Of a stretch of DNA of 64,000 nucleotides, positions 2,758 to 56,268 are shown one piece after another. Both the position numbers and the translations under genes were made by a program. Source of the stretch: Prasinococcaceae sp. CCMP 1430 (lineage: Eukaryota > Plantae > Prasinodermophyta); contig RQSC01000011.1 in NCBI GenBank assembly GCA_013416795.1, positions 112,721 to 176,720 of the forward strand. Direction: 5' to 3'. Numbering within the stretch: the stretch's first letter is position 1; each line of letters starts with the position of its first letter. Under the pieces are notes generated by a model. It ran no database searches. It was not told the origin of the DNA and was given only the letters and a program-made list of their open reading frames with translations.

Positions 2758-4577
2758 CTACGTGATCCCGCTGGTGTTGCAATGGATGGACTTGAGCCCG
2801 GTCGTCGAATCAGTGTGCGGGAAACACATCCTACGGCAATGGCCAGGAATTGCCTCCTTGAACTTTCTCATTCTGCTCCAAAGCCCGTACCTGGCGGGGC
2901 AAGTGATTGGCGCTGTTAGCCGCGACACCCACGCAGCGCGAGGCGCTCGCGGCGCCATCCCGAAGCTCAGAGCGCTCCGGACCTTCCACATATCGGGACG
3001 CCATACATGCACGCCACCCGACCGCTGAGATGGCTGGGCCTACCCATGGCTCTCTTCATGTCCTGGTGAACGACAGGGAGCACCATTGAGGCAGGTGCAT
3101 CGCAGCCGTTGTTCAGATGCTTGGCTATCATCCAGCGACTGCAGCACTCGAAGGCCGCGTTGAAGTTGCGCAAGCGCGATGCCCCCATTTTGCGGTCCGT
3201 GGCCGCCGCGAGCGCAATCCCCACTCGCGTGTCCTCGAACCACAGTCTGCGCAGCGAGCACTTGTCCTGCAGATCAGTCGCGTTCGCGAAGTAATCGGGA
3301 TTGCCAGCGTCGAACTCCTTGGGCGAAGGGTGCCCAAGGAGCCCCGCTGCCCGCACCCACCCCGCTATGTCGTCGACGCTCGACGCGAACTCGTCCGGCA
3401 GGGGCCCGCCCGAAGCGGGGCCTCGCCACAGCGCCCTCGCGACCTGAAACGCCGCGTCTCGGCTGAGCAAGTACGACCAGCCCGCGGCGTATCGCGTGTG
3501 TGGACAGGTGTCGGGCCACTCGTCCTCGGTCAGGGACCACTTGTGCCCGGGCTTCCTTATCGGAATAAACCCCCATTTGGACTCAAGCGCGCCGGCAAAA
3601 ATGGCCTTGCCGTCGCCGTCGCCCTCCTCCGTCCCCCGGGAAAGGCCCGAGCCGCCGCCTTGCTCTAGCTGCTCCGTGGCCCGTTCACCCTGCGCGTACG
3701 CGCGATCCCATTGTTGCTGCGATATGGCGAACATCGAGAAGTAGATGTGCGCATTGGCCCAATTCACGTAGGCGTCGTCATCTACCTTGAGGATGAGCTC
3801 GGCCCGCGTGTGCGCCAGCGCCCAGAGGATCATCAAGTCGGTCTTGAGGTAGAGGTTATGGTAGCTCTCCTCGACGTCGAGCTTGAGTAGGTCGTCGGCA
3901 TGCCGCAGCTCGCGTACCGCCGCTTCGTTGGCGACACCCTCGTACGCTCGGTCGCCCGGCGGGTGGCCCACCACAAATCTCATATCAACCTGCCCTCGAA
4001 GGGGCGGCAGCTCCCTCACGTCGCGCGCGCCGTCAACGGCGAGGACTGAAGGGGGGAGCCCCGGCGCCCACTGGTGCGCCACGAAGTCCTCGTAGTGCGT
4101 GCGGGGCGACTCGGAGACGCCGGTCCCACCTCCGGCGGCACCGGCGAGGAGCTTCTCCCGCTGCTGAGCGTCAAAGTCAAAGTAGTCGCGCAGGATGGCT
4201 CTTTGTAGGGCGCGTCGCTCGTAGCCCTCGGCGTCGCAGCAGGTGCTCATCAGGCCCACGAACATGGTCGCGCGCCCCGCCACGACCGACGGCGCCGCCG
4301 CCGCGCTCGCCGCGGGGGCCGAGCGCGTGCAGGCGCGCCACCCAGCCCGCGAACTCGGGGGCGTTGGGGATGGTCGCCTCCTCCACACCGGGCCAACAAC
4401 GCGCGCGACGCGACATTGCCGCCGCTCCGCCCCGCGGGGAAGTGCAAGCCACCCACACACGCGAGGGGCGAAGCGCCGGCACCGGGGGGCACGTCGGGCT
4501 GCCTTCGCAGGCGGCCAGCTGTACACACGCGCTCGCGCAACAGCCTCCTCCCGCCGCAGCCACGGGCAACGCCACAT
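2758..4577 (-). CDS. GT31 (beta-1,3-galactosyltransferase family) glycosyltransferase; proposed join(complement 3044..~4577, 2758..2912)
   Basis: GT31 motifs LILKVDDDAYVN (DxD), YAAGWSYLLSRDAA, FEDTRVGIAL. Putative last intron 3043..2913 (donor GTAGGC, acceptor GCTAACAG) gives an in-frame Cys-rich terminal exon. N-terminus uncertain. Confidence 0.8.
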
Positions 4578-5138
4578 GCGAGCGCATGGGAGGGCGCTAC
4601 AGGCCCCACGCCGTCGCCATGCACTAAGGTGCGGCAGCCGGCATCACCGGCGGCTCACGGGAGAGGTGACTGGGGCCGAACCTCGCCGCTGGCAGAAAAG
4701 TATAGGGTTTATGTGTTATAGTAACTTGCATGTGATATGTGTTTGGGTTTGGGTATTGACCGCAAATATCGCGATCGTGCGCGCGGGCGCGCGAGCGCTG
4801 TTAGTCCGCGCGGCGCCGCGCGCGCGCAAATGCGCGCGGCGCCACAGGCCGCGCTTTGCGCGGGCGGGGGCGGGGGAGAGGGGAGGAGGGTCGCGCGTGG
4901 GTGGTGGTGGGGTCGTCCGACAGGAGCGGGGGGTGCGAACCCCGGCAGGCGCGGGTGAACGCGGGGCGAGAGGCGTGTGTGGGGGGGGGGGGAGCGCCGC
5001 GCGCGCGTGCGCGGCGGCGCCCCGGGTTTGGGCCACGAAAAAAGTGTGTTAGGGTTGGAGGGCCGGCCAGGAGGAAGGGGGAATCTTCTGAAAGGTCGGC
5101 GCTGCCGCATTTGCCACCCATCGCAAGGGCGTGCCGCC

Positions 5139-7040
5139 ATGGTGGCGAGCGGCGCCTTGATGGGCCCGCAGCTCTCCGACAGCCTAGAGACGGCGTCCAA
5201 GTTCGTGCGCGACTACGTTGCGGCCGTGTCCGACGGGAGGCTGCAGGGCTACTCGCGCACCGAGCGCCGCGTGCGCGAGGCCACGCGCAATGAGCCGTGG
5301 GGCCCGACCGGCCCCATCCTCCAGGAGCTCGCGGCGATCACCTTCGACCACGCAGAGATCGGCCCGATACTGGCGATGCTGGCTCGCCGCCTCGACTCGA
5401 CGGGCTTCGAGTGGCGACATGTTTACAAGGCCCTCACTGTGATTGAGTACCTCGCCACAAGGGGCTCCGAGGCCTTTGCTGGCGCAGCGAGGGGCCTCGT
5501 GCCCAAGATATCCGTCCTTACGGACACTACCGGCGACGGCATCGGTTTCCAGTACGTGGATCCGAAGACGCACAAGGACGAGGGTATCAACGTGCGACAC
5601 AAGGCGGTACGTGATGTTGATGAGCAGTCTTGGGCCGCTGACAGCAGCACGCCCATTCCACGTCGATGTATCGCGTGCGCCGCGTTCCCTGCGCTTGCAC
5701 CTTGAGGTGGTAGACGGAGCTGCCCTGGGCGCGTTGAGAAAGCATGCACAGTGCTGACAGAGTTGGCCGCGCCGCCCATTATTTCGGCGCGAGCTTGATA
5801 GTCACAGCTGCACGCGCTGCTCAGTGACTCGGACGCCCTGCTCAACGAGCGCTCCAAGGAGCACCGCACATACGGCGGCATGTCGAGCGACGAGTCCAGG
5901 GCGACCGCAGCGCAACAGCCGCCGCCCGCGGACCAGTACACCGCAGCCGCACAGGCCCGTTATAACGGATTGGCCGCGCCACAACAACAACCGCAGCGCG
6001 GTCACGGCGATATGTCATTCGTGTCATCGTATACCTCCTCCACGTCGCAACAGGGCTCCGCCTCCAACTCTTCTACCACGGGTGGGCACGACGGCTTTTC
6101 GCTCGCCACGGGCGGCCCCTCACAAAACCGCGTGGCTACAACCATGGCCACTCCCGAGCCGGCGCGGGTTCCTGCAGGCCAGGGCCGTGCCGCAGGCGAG
6201 ACCAAGGGAGTGACGGCGGAGCAGAACAAAAAGCACCTGCAGGCTTTGGCGCGACTCATGAAGCTGCCACACAACCGAGAGTGCGCGGATTGCAGGGCCA
6301 AGAACCCGCGATGGTGTTCCGTGAGCTGCGGCGTCTTTATCTGCATGAGGTGCAGCGGGATCCACCGTGGGCTTGGCGTCCATATCACGAAGGTGCGCTC
6401 CTGCTCGCTGGACACGTTCCTGCCCGAGCAGGTGCGCTTTCTGGCGCGCACAGGCAACGCTGTCGCCAACTCGTACTGGGAGGCGCGCCTGCCGCCCAAC
6501 GAGCGCCCTCATTCGGCGGGCCTCGAAGGGAAGACGACCATCAACATCGAGCGCTTCATTCGCAACAAGTACGAGGGCAAGTGGGTCGCGCCAGGTTCAA
6601 TCTGGCCGCCGCCTGGAGACGCCCCCCCAGCGACTGCCGTGGACCCGGCCAACGGCGCGCAGCCCCCTCATCACAGCGTGTCAGCGCCGTCTCTCATCAC
6701 CGCAGGAGCGCAGCAGGCGCAACAGCAGCCGTCAAACATGGACGCGCTCTTTGGACTGCAGATATCGAGCACCGCCGCTCCTGCGTCGGCCGGACCGGCT
6801 GCGGCAGCTGCTGCACCCGTGGAGTACGGGCTGGCCAGTACACCTGCCGTGCAACAGGCTCCTGAGGAGGATGCCTTTGCGTATCTGCACAGCCCTGGCG
6901 GCAGCAACAACAGCGCGCCGGTCGCTGTCGCCGGTGCCGGCCCGCCTGCTGCGTCGGGGGGCAACATGCTAGCTGCAATGCTCCAGACGCCGAGTGCGGC
7001 ACCCGCCAATGCGAACAAGGGCTACGATCTGCTGCTGTGA
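5139..7040 (+). CDS. ENTH (epsin)-ArfGAP fusion protein; join(5139..5606, 5802..7040)
   Basis: ENTH motifs [34 protein letters not shown]; intron 5607..5801 (GTACGT...TAG; alternative acceptor 5807) continues SQLHALLSD in frame into an ArfGAP zinc finger CADC-x16-CMRC-x4-R (AGD5/SMAP-like: [25 protein letters not shown]). Confidence 0.85.
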
Positions 7041-7191
7041 GTACGGGCGGGGCGTGCCCGCGCCCAGACGACGTAGCTCTCGCATCGGTTGCTTCTTCTG
7101 AGCTAGCTAGCGACAGCGGCGTCGGTGGATCGCCACGTGATTTGGTCCATTGTTATTACATGAAAGTTTTGATTGCGCTCCTCCGTCGCGA

Positions 7192-8547
7192 TCATGTGCT
7201 TGGTCTGCCGCCCGTGGCCGCGCAGCGCGCAGCGCATGCAAGCATGGTCACGACGTCGCGGATCCCGGACCCCTCGATGCTCCTGCTCTTCATGTCGTAG
7301 AGCGCGCGACTGTGGATCGAATGCCTGTTGAACACAGGCTCGAACTCACTAAGCTGGAGTTGGCCGTCTCCGTTTTGGTCGAAGATGAGGTACATGACAT
7401 CAACCATAACGTCAGTGATGAGACCTTGGCAGTTCGGGTTGGCTGCGACCAGCGCGTGCTTAAAGTCGTGCTTGCTGAGGCCACGACTCGCATCACGCGC
7501 GTACGCATTGAGCGCCACCATGAGCTGCTCCGCGCGCTCGTTGCGCAGCTCAGCCATGGCACAAAACTGCTCGAAGCTCACGAGGAACTGCGGGTCCTCG
7601 CTATCTAGCGGCAAGCCCAGGCTCGGCAGCTGCACCAGGCGGCGCTTGTACGCCGGCACATCGCGGCTGTGCGCGTTGGCGATCAGCGACTCTGCGAAGT
7701 CGCGCAGCGAGATACTGCCCCTGTTCTCCACGTCGTAGTGCTCAAACTCGAGCCGCATAACGGCGCGATGCACGCGCATGAGCATTTCCTGGAAAGCGGG
7801 AAGCGTGATCTTGCGGTCAAGGCGCTCACCGAAATGGTGGCGCATGAAGCGCGTGCGCTTCCAGTCCACGTGCCTTGTGTCCCAGGTGAAGGTACGCTTG
7901 CGACATAGCACCGTCACCGCCTGCGTGAACTCGTCCGCGTCGATGACGCCATTGCCGTCGACATCAAACATGTTGAAGGCCACATCAGTGCGGCCACCCG
8001 ACGTGGGGATGTTCAGCATAGCGTGGAAGAGCACGAACTCGTCGAAGGAGATGAGGCCGTCCTCGTCCAGGTCGAAGTCGTCGAAGAGCGCTCTCGCATT
8101 GCGCGTCGTCGAGCGCAGGGCTCGCTCGCGGACCTTGACAGCAGAGGCGCTGCCCGACGCGTCCGAGCCCGGGCCCTCGTCCGGCGCGACCGCATCCGCC
8201 TTATGGCGCGGCGCCCTTGGAAACGTTGGCACGCACCCTCGGAGGAAGTTGTCGCGCGTCATCTTGCGCTCGCCCGTCGCCGGGTCCGTGTGCTTCGCAA
8301 AGGCCGCGAAGATGGTGTGCGCAGGCGCGGCCTTCAAGGCGAGGAAGCCGTCACCGAACATGTACGCGTCTGCGTCGTCCTTTCCATCGCCATCCTGGCT
8401 GGTGCCCCCGTCACCGCTCGAGCCGTCGTCGCCTGCGCCCGCAGCTCGGCGGGCCTCCTCGGCGAGGAGCGTGCGACCACCAAACGCCATGCCGAGGCGC
8501 GCGACGAGCCCCGCGCCGCCGGCGCCGTTCGCGCCCGCACCAAACAT
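7192..8547 (-). CDS. MICU: Mitochondrial calcium uptake protein (MICU family, EF-hands); 5' exon(s) uncertain
   Basis: KMTRDNFL, EF-hands DLDEDGLISFDEF, DVDGNGVIDADEF, DQNGDGQLQLSEF and 'VMRLEFEHYD' match the MICU layout. ATG at 8547 is provisional; the ORF is open to 8922. Confidence 0.8.
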   Translation of the reverse strand: MFGAGANGAGGAGLVARLGMAFGGRTLLAEEARRAAGAGDDGSSGDGGTSQDGDGKDDADAYMFGDGFLALKAAPAHTIFAAFAKHTDPATGERKMTRDNFLRGCVPTFPRAPRHKADAVAPDEGPGSDASGSASAVKVRERALRSTTRNARALFDDFDLDEDGLISFDEFVLFHAMLNIPTSGGRTDVAFNMFDVDGNGVIDADEFTQAVTVLCRKRTFTWDTRHVDWKRTRFMRHHFGERLDRKITLPAFQEMLMRVHRAVMRLEFEHYDVENRGSISLRDFAESLIANAHSRDVPAYKRRLVQLPSLGLPLDSEDPQFLVSFEQFCAMAELRNERAEQLMVALNAYARDASRGLSKHDFKHALVAANPNCQGLITDVMVDVMYLIFDQNGDGQLQLSEFEPVFNRHSIHSRALYDMKSRSIEGSGIRDVVTMLACAARCAATGGRPST

Positions 8548-9166
8548 GCCACCTTCCTCGACCACATCGCCGCCGCACCCGTCCGCTCGCTCGTGCTCCG
8601 GCCTACCCCTTGCCGACGACACCGAAGTCGTCGTCAGAATCGCCCGACCGCGCCCATCGCGACCCCGGGCTCCCGCGGGCCCCTGCCGCGCCGCGCGCGG
8701 CCACAACCCCTCCCGCCCCCCCTTGTTTGCGCAAGCGCAGGCTGGGGCACGCCGCGGGGAGAGGTGTGCGGGTGGGGGAAGGCAGCGCTGTGGCACGCGC
8801 GCACAAGCGAGCTCCATGAACGCGCGCGCGCGCGCGCGCGACAAAAACAGGACGAAAAAAAGAAGAAAACAAACGACGAAGGCGTTTTTTTGGGGGGATT
8901 TTCCTTTTTTTTTTTGCCACACCGACCCCCGGATCAGGACCTCGGTCGGAAGGAACCGCCTCCATCGAAAGGCACCCGAACGTGTCGCGCCTCATGCGGA
9001 TGCTCTCTTCGAGTTCCTCCGAGCGAACCGAACCAAAGCTCGAAAATGGCAGTTTTTTTTTTCTTTTTTCGGGCGCGCGCGTGTCGGTTTCGTGTGTGTG
9101 TGTGTGGAATGCAGGCGGACTTTGGGGCCACACCGCAGCGCTGGCGAGGGGCTGCGCAGCTGCCTT

Positions 9167-9179
9167 CCCCCCCCCCCCG

Positions 9180-9231
<52 letters not shown>
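9167..9231 (+). repeat. Poly-C tract (~65 nt, one G interruption at 9179)
   Basis: Directly visible homopolymer between the divergent MICU and EAF6 genes. Confidence 0.95.
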
Positions 9232-9338
9232 TGCTCCCGCTCCCGCTCCCCCGCCCGCCCTCCCCTGCCTGCCTGCCTGCCGCCACAGCCGCGCGCGACG
9301 CCCGCGATCCCCCCCTCCCCCACACAGGGCCGCCGCCG

Positions 9339-51832: not shown

Positions 51833-52716
51833 NNNNNNNNNNNNNNNNNNNNNNNNNNNNNNNNNNNNNNNNNNNNNNNNNNNNNNNNNNNNNNNNNNNN
51901 NNNNNNNNNNNNNNNNNNNNNNNNNNNNNNNNNNNNNNNNNNNNNNNNNNNNNNNNNNNNNNNNNNNNNNNNNNNNNNNNNNNNNNNNNNNNNNNNNNNN
52001 NNNNNNNNNNNNNNNNNNNNNNNNNNNNNNNNNNNNNNNNNNNNNNNNNNNNNNNNNNNNNNNNNNNNNNNNNNNNNNNNNNNNNNNNNNNNNNNNNNNN
52101 NNNNNNNNNNNNNNNNNNNNNNNNNNNNNNNNNNNNNNNNNNNNNNNNNNNNNNNNNNNNNNNNNNNNNNNNNNNNNNNNNNNNNNNNNNNNNNNNNNNN
52201 NNNNNNNNNNNNNNNNNNNNNNNNNNNNNNNNNNNNNNNNNNNNNNNNNNNNNNNNNNNNNNNNNNNNNNNNNNNNNNNNNNNNNNNNNNNNNNNNNNNN
52301 NNNNNNNNNNNNNNNNNNNNNNNNNNNNNNNNNNNNNNNNNNNNNNNNNNNNNNNNNNNNNNNNNNNNNNNNNNNNNNNNNNNNNNNNNNNNNNNNNNNN
52401 NNNNNNNNNNNNNNNNNNNNNNNNNNNNNNNNNNNNNNNNNNNNNNNNNNNNNNNNNNNNNNNNNNNNNNNNNNNNNNNNNNNNNNNNNNNNNNNNNNNN
52501 NNNNNNNNNNNNNNNNNNNNNNNNNNNNNNNNNNNNNNNNNNNNNNNNNNNNNNNNNNNNNNNNNNNNNNNNNNNNNNNNNNNNNNNNNNNNNNNNNNNN
52601 NNNNNNNNNNNNNNNNNNNNNNNNNNNNNNNNNNNNNNNNNNNNNNNNNNNNNNNNNNNNNNNNNNNNNNNNNNNNNNNNNNNNNNNNNNNNNNNNNNNN
52701 NNNNNNNNNNNNNNNC
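51833..52716. other. Assembly gap (N run)
   Basis: Run of N; probably contains the PRPS1 5' exons. Confidence 1.
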
Positions 52717-53242
52717 AGCCCTCGCCGCGTGCGCGCGCGCGCGCGCGCGCGACCGCCCCGCGGGGCCCGCGACACCGCGGAGTTCCAATCCCGACCCGAC
52801 GCGGCCGACCTCGTTTTATTACAATCAACTTCGCGCGGGCTTCGCGGAAAGCCGCCCCGAAATGGGAGCGAAATCCGCCGCGTCGGGCGCACGTCAAAAA
52901 GGCCGCGCGAGCGCGCGGGCGTGAGGCCACGTCGGCCGCGCGGGCGCCGCGCGCCGCCGCCATCAAAAGGCACGCGGGCGGGAACGCCTGCGTGCGCGCT
53001 GATACGGGCGGGGGAAAATGCATGCGAAGTGACGGACGCAACGTTTTCCGTGCTGGAGGGTGTTTGTAGGGCACATCGCAGGCGCGGCCGCGGCCGCACA
53101 CGGGTTCGGAATGCACTGCCAAGCGTCAAGCGTTTAGGTTAGGGAGGATTTTGAGCTGCATGTTGGGGTTTGAGAGAGAGGGTCCATCACAGGCGCCGCT
53201 ATGGTGCGATTTGATATGTCAGCCGTGCGGCGTGTGAACGCG

Positions 53243-53267
53243 GTCGCCCGTGGGTATAGGACAGGTT
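53243..53267 (+). promoter_or_regulatory. Shared 25-mer, copy 2
   Basis: 23/25 identical to 16988..17012. Confidence 0.5.
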
Positions 53268-53581
53268 AAAATGGATGTTGTGCGTTGGCGAGGCGAGCGG
53301 GCGCGGCGGCGCCGCGCGCTGCTAACGGCGGCGCCGGCGCCGGAGGCCGCCGCCGCCGCGCCCGCGCGCTCGCTCCCGACCTCGGCGACCGCCATTATGG
53401 GTCCGGTCAGGGGCTGCACACGCCGGTGAGGGGGGGGAGGGGAGAGGCGGTGGGGGAGGGGGGAGGGGCGGTAGCGGCGCTGTGTGGTAACCTCTCGCCA
53501 CCCCGGCCTGCTGCGCGCGGGCGGGTGGATAAGCATAGTCTGCCCACACAGGCACCTCCAGCTCCGCCTCGGCCGCCCGCG

Positions 53582-53611
53582 GCCATCAAACGCCATCAAA
53601 CGCCATCAAAC
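53582..53611 (+). repeat. (GCCATCAAAC)3 tandem repeat containing the CCATCAAA/TTTGATGG promoter word
   Basis: Directly visible; the same 8-mer recurs singly in other promoters. Confidence 0.85.
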
Positions 53612-53736
53612 GCGCATGCGCGCGCGCGCCGTGGTCAAAAACGCATGCGCCGCGCGGCCTCGCTCGCCCGGGCTTTTTTTTTTTTTTTTGGCGGTTCGAG
53701 CTCGGTTCCGGTTCCGGCCCTTCGAGGGGAGGGGGG

Positions 53737-54289
53737 ATGCGGAAATCGCACGCAAAAATCAAAACAAAAATCAAAATCAAAATCAAAATCAAAATCAAAA
53801 AATATCGAAGGCAGAGTCAGATCAGAGTCCGCGGAGGGGAATTCGTATCAAGGGCCATTCGGGCGCCTCCCCCCCCCCCCCCGAAAACGGCACCGCGAGG
53901 GTCGCGCGCGCGCGCGCCGCGCGCATGCTCGGGCGGGCGGGGCAGGAAAAGGAGGAGGCCGACGCCGAGGCTGGCGCTAACGACGCGGCCGCCGGGCGGC
54001 GCGGCGGCAAAACCCGAGGTCATCAGGGCGCCCGTGGCCGTCGCGGCCGCTCCCGCCGGCGGCTCGGGGCAGGGCTCGCCGCCGTGGCTCGCGCCAGGCA
54101 ATCCCCCCAAGGCGGCGCCCAAGCTTGCGGCGGGCGAAGTTGCGGCGGGCGAAGTTGCGGCGGGCAAGCTTGGGGCGGGCAAGCTTGCGGGGGGCGGGCG
54201 AGAGGCCGCCGGAGAGGCTGCCAAGGAGGGTGGGGGCGCGGCGATCGCCTCGAGTCGCCCCCCCGGGCGGCGGCGACGACGCGTCATCG

Positions 54290-54343
<54 letters not shown>

Positions 54344-56268
54344 GCAGCTCCTCCTCGGGCGGCGGCGACGAGGGCAGCAGCGGCCTGCCGCCGTGGGCGT
54401 GGAAGGCCGGCGTGGCGCTCGCGCTGGCGCTGGTCGCGTGGCAGCAGGAGCTCCCCAAGCAGCTCGTGGCGACGAAGCGCATCATCGCCTTCAAGAAGCG
54501 CACCAAGGCGGTGTTCAAGAAGACCGGCGGGCAGTACCAGATCCCCGAGTACTTCGCGAGCGTCGTGGCGAAGCACGGCGACAAGGTGGCGTACGTCATG
54601 GGCGGGCGCGAGGTGACGTACCGCGAGGTGGACGAGTACTCCAACCGCGTGGCGCGCTGGGCCGCCGAGGACGCCAAGATCCCCGTGGGCGCGACGGTGG
54701 CGCTGGTGGCGTACAACTCGCCCGAGTTCGTGGGCTTCTGGCTGGGGATGGCCAAGGCGGGCTGCAAGACGGCGCTGATCAACACCAACCTCGCGGGGAA
54801 GCCGCTCGCGCACTGCCTGCGCGTGGCCTTCGACAACAACGACAAGGACGCGGACAGCGTCGTCGTTGTGAGCCCCGAGCTCGCCGACAAGGTGGGCAAG
54901 GTCCGCGGCCAGATCGGCGGGGCGCGGCTCTTCGCGCTCTCCGGCGAGGCCGCGCAGGCCGGCGCCAAGCCGCTCGGCGAGGCGCTGGCCAAGCTGCCCG
55001 CGTCGGCGCCCCCCGACCGCCGCACCTCCAAGGCCTTCAAGGACGTGCTCTTCTACATCTACACCAGCGGCACGACGGGCCTGCCCAAGGCGGCCAAGAT
55101 CACCCACCAGCGGTTCTACATGGGCGCCGTCGGGTGCAAGGAGCTCTACAACATCACCCCCAAGGACAAGTACTACTGCGCGCTGCCGCTCTACCACAGC
55201 GCGGGCGGTATCCTCGCCGTGGGCTCGTCGTGGGAGTGCGGCATCCCCTGCGTGCTGCGCCCCAAGTTCAGCGCGAGCAACTTCATCAAGGACTGCCGCG
55301 ACAACGGCTGCACGGTCGCGCAGTACATCGGCGAGCTCTGCCGCTACCTCATGCAGACGCCCACCTCGCCCATCGACCGCGACCACAAGCTGCGCCTCGT
55401 CGTGGGCAACGGCATGCGCCCCGACGTGTGGACGCCCTTCATGGAGCGCTTCGGCATCAAGGCGGTCGGCGAGTTCTACGCCGCCACCGAGGGCAACGCC
55501 AACGTCTTCAACTTCGGCCTGCCGTGCCCGGCGGGCACCATCGGCTACCTGCCGGGCATCATCCGCGCGATCTACCCCGTCAAATTCTTCGCCATCGACC
55601 AGATCACCGAGGAGCTCGAGCGGGACCCCAAGACGGGCCTCTGCCGCGAGGTCAAGCCAGGCGAGCGCGGCGAGGCCATGGGTCTCATCACCAGCGATCC
55701 GGACCGCCAATTCGATGGCTACACGAACAAGGCCGCCACCAAGAAGAAGATCGCCGAGAACTGCGCCAAGCAGGGCGATCAGTGGTTCCGCACCGGCGAC
55801 CTGCTGCGCATGGACTCCAAGGGCAACGTCTTCTTCTGCGACCGCCTGGGCGACACCTTCCGCTGGAAGGGCGAGAACGTGGCCACCACTGAGGTGCAGG
55901 AGGCCATCTCGGGGGCGCGCGGCGTCTCGGAGGTGAACGTGTACGGCGTGCTTGTGCCCAAGTGCGACGGCCGCGCGGGCATGGCATCGCTGGTCGTCGA
56001 CGGCAAGCCCGAGAGCTTCGACTTCAGCGGACTGTACAAGGCCGCTCAGGAGCTGCCCGCGTACGCGCGCCCGCTCTTCGTCCGGACCGTGCCGTCGGTG
56101 GAAATCACCGGCACGCTCAAGCACAAGAAGGTCGACCTGCGCAACCAGGGCTTCGACCCGAACGCCATCGACGACCAGCTCTTCTTCAAGGACGATGTCA
56201 AGAAGACGTACGTGCCGCTGACGCCCGAGCTCTACACTAAGATCGCCTCGGGCGAGATCAGGGTGTGA
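53737..56268 (+). CDS. FATP: FATP/SLC27-type very-long-chain acyl-CoA synthetase / fatty acid transport protein; true start uncertain (conserved part from ~54400)
   Basis: AMP-binding FYIYTSGTTGLPKAA, PLYHSAG, VAQYIGELCRYL, GNGMRPDVW, EFYAATEGN, WFRTGDLL, FATP signature DRLGDTFRWKGENVATTEV, YGVLVP..DGRAGMA. Confidence 0.93.
53754..53802 (+). repeat. (AAAATC)n hexamer array
   Basis: Directly visible; two units also at ~35875..35886. Confidence 0.85.
54121..54195 (+). repeat. Five 15-nt units encoding KLAAG/EVAAG/EVAAG/KLGAG/KLAGG
   Basis: Directly visible in the FATP N-terminal extension. Confidence 0.85.

Follow-up and report, generated by a model that had tools for sequence, protein, structure and literature searches.

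In a 64,000-nucleotide stretch of the prasinodermophyte alga Prasinococcaceae sp. CCMP 1430 (contig RQSC01000011.1, positions 112,721 to 176,720; hereafter "the window"), positions 5139-7040 form a single two-exon gene that is transcribed and spliced, and whose predicted product joins an N-terminal epsin-like ENTH domain to an ArfGAP domain of the SMAP/AGD5 type. This fusion is real and old: it is no one-off arrangement but is common to many green algae and defines a conserved, undescribed family, with members across the core Chlorophyta as well as in the deep-branching lineage of the window alga. By analogy with known pairs of clathrin-associated proteins, the product would most likely function as an accessory protein of the clathrin coat, coupling membrane binding to Arf-GTP hydrolysis. 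Taken as a whole, the interpretation as a two-exon ENTH-ArfGAP fusion gene of a conserved family, with an inferred coat-accessory mechanism, is in our judgment very probably correct.

Transcription and splicing of the ENTH-ArfGAP gene

RNA evidence for the gene comes from the assembled contigs of four runs placed on positions 4500-7500 of the window. A 1996-nucleotide (nt) contig from run X1 matches 4988-5605 and 5801-7178 with zero mismatches and covers both domains, and the identical joint is present in a 2382-nt contig from run X2 and a 314-nt contig from run X4. These three runs belong to three different studies, and all omit the same 195 nt with GT..AG ends. None of the contigs placed on this interval covers the intron, and an alternative in-frame acceptor at 5808 (tcacag/CTG) is used by none of them. 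Contigs of this kind prove that the spliced form exists, not at what level.

Translation is expected to start at 5139, since the transcript has no earlier AUG in 4988-5138 (Table 1). Exon 1 ends in ...GINVRHKA at 5606, immediately before a GTACGT donor, while exon 2 opens with SQLHALLSD at 5802 and is free of stops up to the TGA at 7038-7040, for a product of 568 amino acids (aa) as the sum of the two exon translations (156 + 412). Reading through the intron is impossible because of in-frame stops at 5703, 5796, and 5799. The program-made list of open reading frames (ORFs) divides the gene into 4977..5705 and 5880..7040, a division that the initial annotation of this locus had pointed out when proposing an in-frame splice from an ENTH exon to an ArfGAP exon across the junction 5606/5802. 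The contigs bear this proposal out, in that they represent a single spliced mRNA.

Natural differences in metatranscriptome contigs and contigs of related strains (n = 10) further inform on the encoded protein. Eight of the ten are synonymous, including all those within both domains, and the two replacements are confined to the linker (5940) and the tail. Such a pattern is typical of a protein that is constrained in both of its domains.

Domain composition and closest relatives

Domain, homology, and alignment analyses were performed on each exon translation separately. Exon 1 matches the Pfam ENTH profile (PF01417) at 7e-29, with 100.8 bits against a cut-off of 24, over aa 38-156 of the exon and profile positions 1-111 of 124. 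In an alignment of both exons with full-length fused proteins, exon 1 ends and exon 2 begins in adjacent columns, with neither gap nor overlap, so that the junction completes ENTH helix 8, as had been anticipated from the sequence. Among solved structures, the exon 1 ENTH domain scores highest with epsin-1 (87 bits), followed by Ent3 (72 bits) and epsinR (66 bits), and its identity to epsin-1 is 41-42% in a structural alignment. The PI(4,5)P2 pocket of epsin-1 is reportedly formed by R8, K11, R25, N30, R63, K69, and H73 (Ford et al. 2002). Four of these seven contact residues are kept, with R25, N30, R63, and H73 corresponding to R46, N51, R84, and H94. No ubiquitin-interacting motif (UIM) was detected by Pfam, and no NPF or DPW by a motif scan of the gene product. 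On these sequence comparisons and the trees described below, the ENTH half is classified as epsin-like and as a paralogue of the canonical plant epsins. We also considered and rejected orthology with the Arabidopsis ENTH protein MTV1, whose ENTH structure (PDB 1vdy) is unmatched by sequence even at E<=10 and ranks 34th in the structural alignment, at 20% identity.

Exon 2 matches the Pfam ArfGap profile (PF01412) at 5e-39, with 133.4 bits against a cut-off of 28.7, over aa 147-260. The catalytic motif is intact, with C161, C164, C181, and C184 of exon 2 forming CX2CX16CX2C and R189 as the Arg finger (CX2CX16CX2CX4R). The best solved relatives are SMAP1 (2crr, 105 bits) and SMAP2 (2iqj, 98 bits), and by sequence the GAP half is assigned to the SMAP/AGD5 type, grouping with green AGD5/AGD15-type GAPs. 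Pfam, solved relatives, and trees hence all agree with the initial annotation, which had named an epsin-like ENTH domain and an SMAP/AGD5-like ArfGAP with a complete zinc finger and catalytic Arg. In most fused proteins, the GAP domain is preceded by a motif of the form AGE[TM]KGV[ST]xEEN, which is diverged in two (Sanguina P0152, and P0133); at the same position, stand-alone green AGD5-like proteins start with MNxKRxVSxEEN. Among named sequences, the GAP region is matched best by a transcript fragment of Prasinococcus capsulatus (71% identity), in which this motif has a diverged form (AGHTKGVS).

The closest relative of the window protein is a 528-aa protein (P0002/P0245) whose identity to it is 66% for the ENTH exon and 41% for exon 2. 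Its gene lies in genomic contigs from Tara Oceans (L002-L004), where ENTH and ArfGap occupy one uninterrupted ORF, followed by a convergent EF-hand gene whose protein is 44% identical to that of the window neighbour. Since this syntenic relative holds both domains in an intron-free ORF, the fusion is present in genomic DNA without any need for splicing. P0002 matches the ENTH profile over positions 1-123 of 124, and an AlphaFold model of this intron-free protein was made to stand in for the window protein. In the model, the ENTH domain is predicted with high confidence (predicted local distance difference test, pLDDT, 88-98) and the GAP domain with moderate confidence, with the segments between them disordered. 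Residues 148-174, equivalent to window helix 8, are helical with pLDDT >90, and residues 178-260, equivalent to the window linker, have pLDDT <50. The tail is predicted to be disordered except for short helices at the spots of LFGL, the acidic-Phe motif, and the C-terminal DLLL. Foldseek searches with this model matched epsin ENTH domains (template modelling score 0.8-0.9) and the SMAP1 GAP domain; an ESM Atlas look-up with P0002 returned only ENTH clusters with scores <0.8 and was uninformative. The window protein and its Tara relative (568 and 528 aa) are shorter than the other fused members (600-945 aa), and both have their own set of tail motifs (LFGL, acidic-Phe, and a terminal GYDLLL) and no canonical clathrin box.

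A conserved family across green algae

At least 18 proteins with an ENTH domain followed by an ArfGAP domain were identified, from Chlorophyceae, Trebouxiophyceae, Ulvophyceae, Chlorodendrophyceae, and metagenomes. Six of these were obtained from a word-index search with exon 2, four via the ENTH part of the Micractinium protein, and eight more from an exhaustive HMMER search with exon 1, from which the best 150 representatives were taken. By name, the family is represented in Micractinium conductrix, M. tetrahymenae, Chlorella vulgaris, Auxenochlorella, Picochlorum, Tetraselmis chui, Edaphochlamys, Pleodorina, Sanguina, and Ostreobium; example entries are M. conductrix "AGD15 isoform X1" (P0004), C. 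vulgaris P0075, Edaphochlamys KAG2490744.1, Pleodorina GLC33495.1, and Ostreobium CAD7695412.1. All share with the window protein the domain order, the ENTH clade, and the GAP clade, and most of them the AGETKGV motif.

In the ENTH tree, the fused proteins form a single clade together with nine short or fragmentary entries, supported by a Shimodaira-Hasegawa-like approximate likelihood ratio test (SH-aLRT) value of 97 in a quick tree of 163 rows, and by an ultrafast bootstrap (UFBoot) of 100 and SH-aLRT of 99 in a careful tree of 75 rows. With midpoint rooting, the first branch of this clade consists of the window protein and its Tara relative. Canonical green epsins lie in a separate EPSIN clade, in which EPSIN2-like proteins of angiosperms are found along with sequences from Cymbomonas, Mesostigma, Chara, and a fern. 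The GAP tree, sampled within the SMAP/AGD5 subfamily, likewise places the fused proteins in one clade (SH-aLRT 94), nested within a green group (SH-aLRT 88) that also includes AGD15 of plants and the stand-alone AGD5-like GAPs of the chlorophytes Chlamydomonas schloesseri, Raphidocelis, and Sanguina. At the genus level, Sanguina has both a fused and a stand-alone GAP. Because the ENTH and GAP halves each form a single clade, these sequence phylogenies suggest that the family probably derives from one ancient fusion.

These results require the novelty of the architecture to be scaled down, as members are already public. The initial annotation had implied that the architecture was unique, which is not supported in view of the fused proteins of other green algae; it had also allowed that the architecture might be common and annotated across this group, which is largely the case with regard to its presence in public databases, where it is widespread, but not with regard to its description. 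NCBI and UniProt labels are generic ("hypothetical protein", "Arf-GAP domain-containing protein", "AGD15 isoform X1", "arf-gap domain 5"), and full-text literature searches aimed at the ENTH-ArfGAP architecture retrieved no description of it, although one may exist all the same.

An annotation problem for this family is that a number of database entries cover just one half of an ENTH-ArfGAP gene, the halves having been called as separate ORFs. Four ENA metagenome proteins (P0001, 387 aa; P0003, additionally frameshifted; P0083, 175 aa; and P0249) are 97-99% identical to single exons of the window gene, and are prokaryote-style ORF calls on eukaryotic contigs, each covering half a protein. A metagenome contig (L001:3694-6004) similarly encodes an ENTH ORF (284 aa) followed 50 nt on by an ArfGap ORF (468 aa). 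On our reading of its sequence, these two ORFs would be joined by a 79-nt GT..AG intron at 4419-4497 (..KQYW/AVSSSETK..) into another ENTH-ArfGAP gene, with the putative intron at a different site from that of the window gene. At least some of the short ENTH-only entries in the fused clade are therefore ORF-caller artefacts, and the possibility that ENTH-only rows of this clade are true stand-alone genes was mostly rejected, these being calls of 136-333 aa on short contigs. Separately, two proteins matched in the ENTH search have other compositions: both contain two ENTH stretches, to which P0132 (839 aa) adds a protein kinase domain further on, and P0085 (673 aa) a weak VHS match that stays below threshold.

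The same tendency of ORF callers to divide the locus, yielding entries of exactly this kind (P0001 and P0083), could also be expected if the window held two separate genes, one ENTH-only and one GAP-only from the ATG at 5880, with the joined RNA contigs, which are not raw reads, being assembly chimeras or rare read-through. This is extremely improbable given an identical GT..AG joint in three studies with the intron uncovered, the exact restoration of ENTH helix 8 at the junction, the presence of both domains in the intron-free genomic ORF of the syntenic Tara relative, and the number of fused homologues. Moreover, the comparable split in L001 would be accounted for by its candidate 79-nt intron.

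Proposed function and comparison with known systems

Partnerships between ENTH or ANTH adaptors and SMAP-type GAPs have been described in plants and animals. According to PMC9274083, which summarises Sauer 2013, Arabidopsis MTV1 (ENTH; At3g16270, PMC9828777) and AGD5 (SMAP-type GAP) are both clathrin-binding components of clathrin-coated vesicles, and they act together in transport from the trans-Golgi network (TGN) to the vacuole. Mammalian SMAP2, which carries a clathrin box and a DLL motif (PMC10846627), has both clathrin and CALM, an ANTH protein, as binding partners at the TGN and early endosome (PMC3756916, PMC10846627), and yeast Age2 depends on an amphipathic helix of its own to reach the membrane (PMC10846627). 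The initial annotation had interpreted the fusion as a Rosetta-stone link between cargo or lipid recognition and Arf1 inactivation, an idea that fits the published MTV1/AGD5 and SMAP2/CALM partnerships by analogy.

Following this analogy, the ENTH domain would place the protein on a phosphoinositide membrane (TGN/endosome or plasma membrane), and may additionally bind SNARE cargo. The tail motifs would bind clathrin or adaptor ears, and the tethered GAP domain would trigger GTP hydrolysis on Arf1-type GTPases within the forming coat. In this scheme, one chain would do the job of partnered ENTH/ANTH adaptors and SMAP-type GAPs (MTV1/EPSIN1-AGD5; CALM-SMAP2).

The window protein resembles, but does not coincide with, each of these systems. 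With SMAP1/SMAP2, Age2, AGD5 (NEV/MTV4), and AGD15, it shares the GAP domain with its intact CX2CX16CX2CX4R motif and its grouping with plant AGD15 and stand-alone chlorophyte AGD5-like proteins. As in the SMAP subfamily, its tail is predicted to be disordered, with a DLL-type and a variant clathrin-box-like sequence as candidate motifs. In SMAP and AGD5 proteins, however, the GAP domain is at the extreme N-terminus, whereas about 300 residues (ENTH and linker) lie ahead of it in the window protein, the tail of which also lacks a canonical clathrin box, a recognised CALM-binding region, and a KKSILSLY-type helix. Similarly, epsin-1, epsinR/CLINT1, Ent1-5, and EPSIN1-3 have a full, N-terminal ENTH fold followed by a disordered region with short motifs, but the ENTH domains of the fused proteins fall into a clade that is distinct from the green EPSIN, CLINT1, and Ent3 groups, and the window protein differs further in its predicted lack of UIM, NPF, and DPW and its apparently catalytic-type GAP domain. 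The MTV1-AGD5 pair is a Rosetta-stone parallel to the fusion, an ENTH adaptor paired with an SMAP-type ArfGAP in clathrin-coated vesicle formation, except that these are separate proteins and the fused ENTH domain is not of the MTV1 type. Because 1vdy is unmatched and so distant in sequence, the resemblance would lie in the working of the pair and not in ENTH orthology.

Several observations weigh against the interpretation proposed here. The RNA evidence, made of assembled contigs and not raw reads, is compatible with an added GAP-only product from the internal ATG at 5880, and the trees were built on ~125 columns each. One protein in the fused ENTH clade, from Pedinophyceae sp. YPF-701 (P0123, CAG9464728.1, 589 aa), is annotated with an ENTH domain only, because either the GAP half was truly lost or its exons were missed. 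In the window protein, epsin-1 K69 corresponds to F90, and the helix-0 basic residues R7, R8, and K11 to A28, A29, and D32. Its tail has no canonical clathrin box (L-phi-x-phi-[DE]) and only LFGL, the acidic-Phe motif, and the terminal DLLL, and coat binding by LFGL, EEDAFAYL, and DLLL is something we only infer. Finally, the function proposed here for the family is a predicted one. As separate observations, further basic residues (K21, R24, and R34) lie near the helix-0 positions, a canonical clathrin box (e.g. LMDFD or LLDLD) is found in most chlorophyte family members, and the tail of P0123 looks similar to that of epsins (LLDFG, DLL).

The site of action can also be read differently, with the fusion acting in plasma-membrane endocytosis rather than at the TGN/endosome, through an epsin-1-like, PI(4,5)P2-binding ENTH domain and a SMAP1-like GAP acting on Arf6-type GTPases. 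The ENTH domain is indeed nearer to epsin-1 than to epsinR or Ent3 and keeps R25, N30, R63, and H73 of the epsin-1 pocket, and the best GAP match is SMAP1, which has a role in endocytosis. Yet neither K69 nor the basic residues of helix 0 are retained, the gene product has no NPF, DPW, or UIM, and a canonical EPSIN clade exists separately in green algae. In addition, the TGN is where AGD5-type green relatives of the GAP half function (PMC9274083). We regard a role in plasma-membrane endocytosis rather than at the TGN/endosome as unlikely, though by no means negligible.

A third concern is whether one of the two domains might be a non-catalytic or non-binding relic, which would make the protein merely an ordinary ArfGAP or an ordinary epsin. 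The partial conservation of the PIP2-contact residues and the Pedinophyceae clade member annotated without a GAP domain would be in line with such a loss. However, both domains score far above their Pfam thresholds and are retained throughout the family, neither the zinc finger nor the Arg finger is disrupted, and the natural variants within both domains are all synonymous, so that a relic domain is improbable.

Evolutionary implications

The position of Prasinodermophyta is disputed, being placed either as sister to Chlorophyta (PMC10495350) or as sister to all green plants (PMC7455551). No streptophyte fused protein was present among the matches listed (the best 150 representatives in the HMMER search with exon 1). 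It is conceivable, although we put this forward tentatively and as the less favored outcome, that the fusion is a single rare genomic change common to the window lineage and Chlorophyta and absent from Streptophyta. A single gain would most simply correspond to the sister relationship of Prasinodermophyta and Chlorophyta, whereas the other view would need a later loss in streptophytes. If this were true, the fusion would provide an independent character on the disputed placement of Prasinodermophyta, and might be used, as a rare genomic change, to mark deep relationships among green plants.

If the proposed function is correct, the family would represent a one-chain coat nucleator and Arf timer, where land plants use separate ENTH and AGD5 proteins. 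A covalent link between an ENTH domain and an SMAP-type GAP, kept since deep green-algal history, independently supports the coupling in clathrin-coat formation that genetics revealed for MTV1/AGD5 in Arabidopsis and SMAP2/CALM in mouse, and a single polypeptide offers a simple system in which to study the timing of membrane or cargo recognition relative to Arf-GTP hydrolysis. As a limit to these implications, the fusion is not unique to the window genome and its members are public under generic names.

Gene features and genomic neighbourhood

The features of the ENTH-ArfGAP gene and of its two neighbours are listed in Table 1.

Table 1 Features of the ENTH-ArfGAP gene and adjacent genes, in window coordinates (UTR, untranslated region).
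Feature	Position	Strand	Basis or remark
5' UTR (minimum extent)	4988..5138	+	X1 contig starts at 4988; ATG-free up to 5138
Coding portion of exon 1, 156 aa, with N-terminal helix region and ENTH helices 1-7	5139..5606	+	
Intron, 195 nt, GT..AG	5607..5801	+	Skipped in X1, X2, and X4 contigs
Start of exon 2: ENTH helix 8	5802..5879	+	Contiguous with helix 8 of fused homologues
Linker of about 100 aa, low-complexity, A/S/G/T/Q-rich	5880..6191	+	Composition
AGETKGV motif, just upstream of GAP domain	6192..6212	+	Conserved in most fused proteins
ArfGAP domain	6240..6581	+	Pfam ArfGap 5e-39
Zinc finger CX2CX16CX2C and Arg finger	6282..6368	+	Sequence reading; SMAP1 alignment
A/P-rich tail with three short motifs	6582..7037	+	Motif scan
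LFGL	6747-6758	+	Tail motif common with closest relative P0002
EEDAFAYL (acidic-Phe)	6864-6887	+	Tail motif common with closest relative P0002
DLLL, C-terminal	7026-7037	+	Tail motif common with closest relative P0002
Stop codon TGA	7038..7040	+	Sequence reading
3' UTR, to end of X1 contig	7041..7178	+	X2 contig runs past, so 3' end not fixed
EF-hand gene, convergent neighbour	7192-8922	-	Synteny with Tara relative, 44% identity
Divergent upstream neighbour, 536-aa ORF with Galactosyl_T (PF01762)	2967-4577	-	Pfam match

On the downstream side (7041-7636), the X2 contig continues from the ENTH-ArfGAP gene and covers at least 440 nt of the EF-hand coding region in antisense, which corresponds either to overlapping 3' ends or to two transcripts merged by unstranded assembly. 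Upstream, the start codons of the Galactosyl_T and ENTH-ArfGAP genes are separated by ~560 nt of very GC-rich sequence with G-runs, and this intergenic stretch may be a shared bidirectional promoter. Beyond the EF-hand gene, at ~9150-9260, a long C run (with G on the opposite strand) is read as poly-proline or poly-glycine in several ORFs on both strands, and represents a simple repeat that is either intergenic or part of a UTR. Further along the window, GC content falls to 0.57 at 52001-56000, compared to 0.65-0.72 in the remainder.

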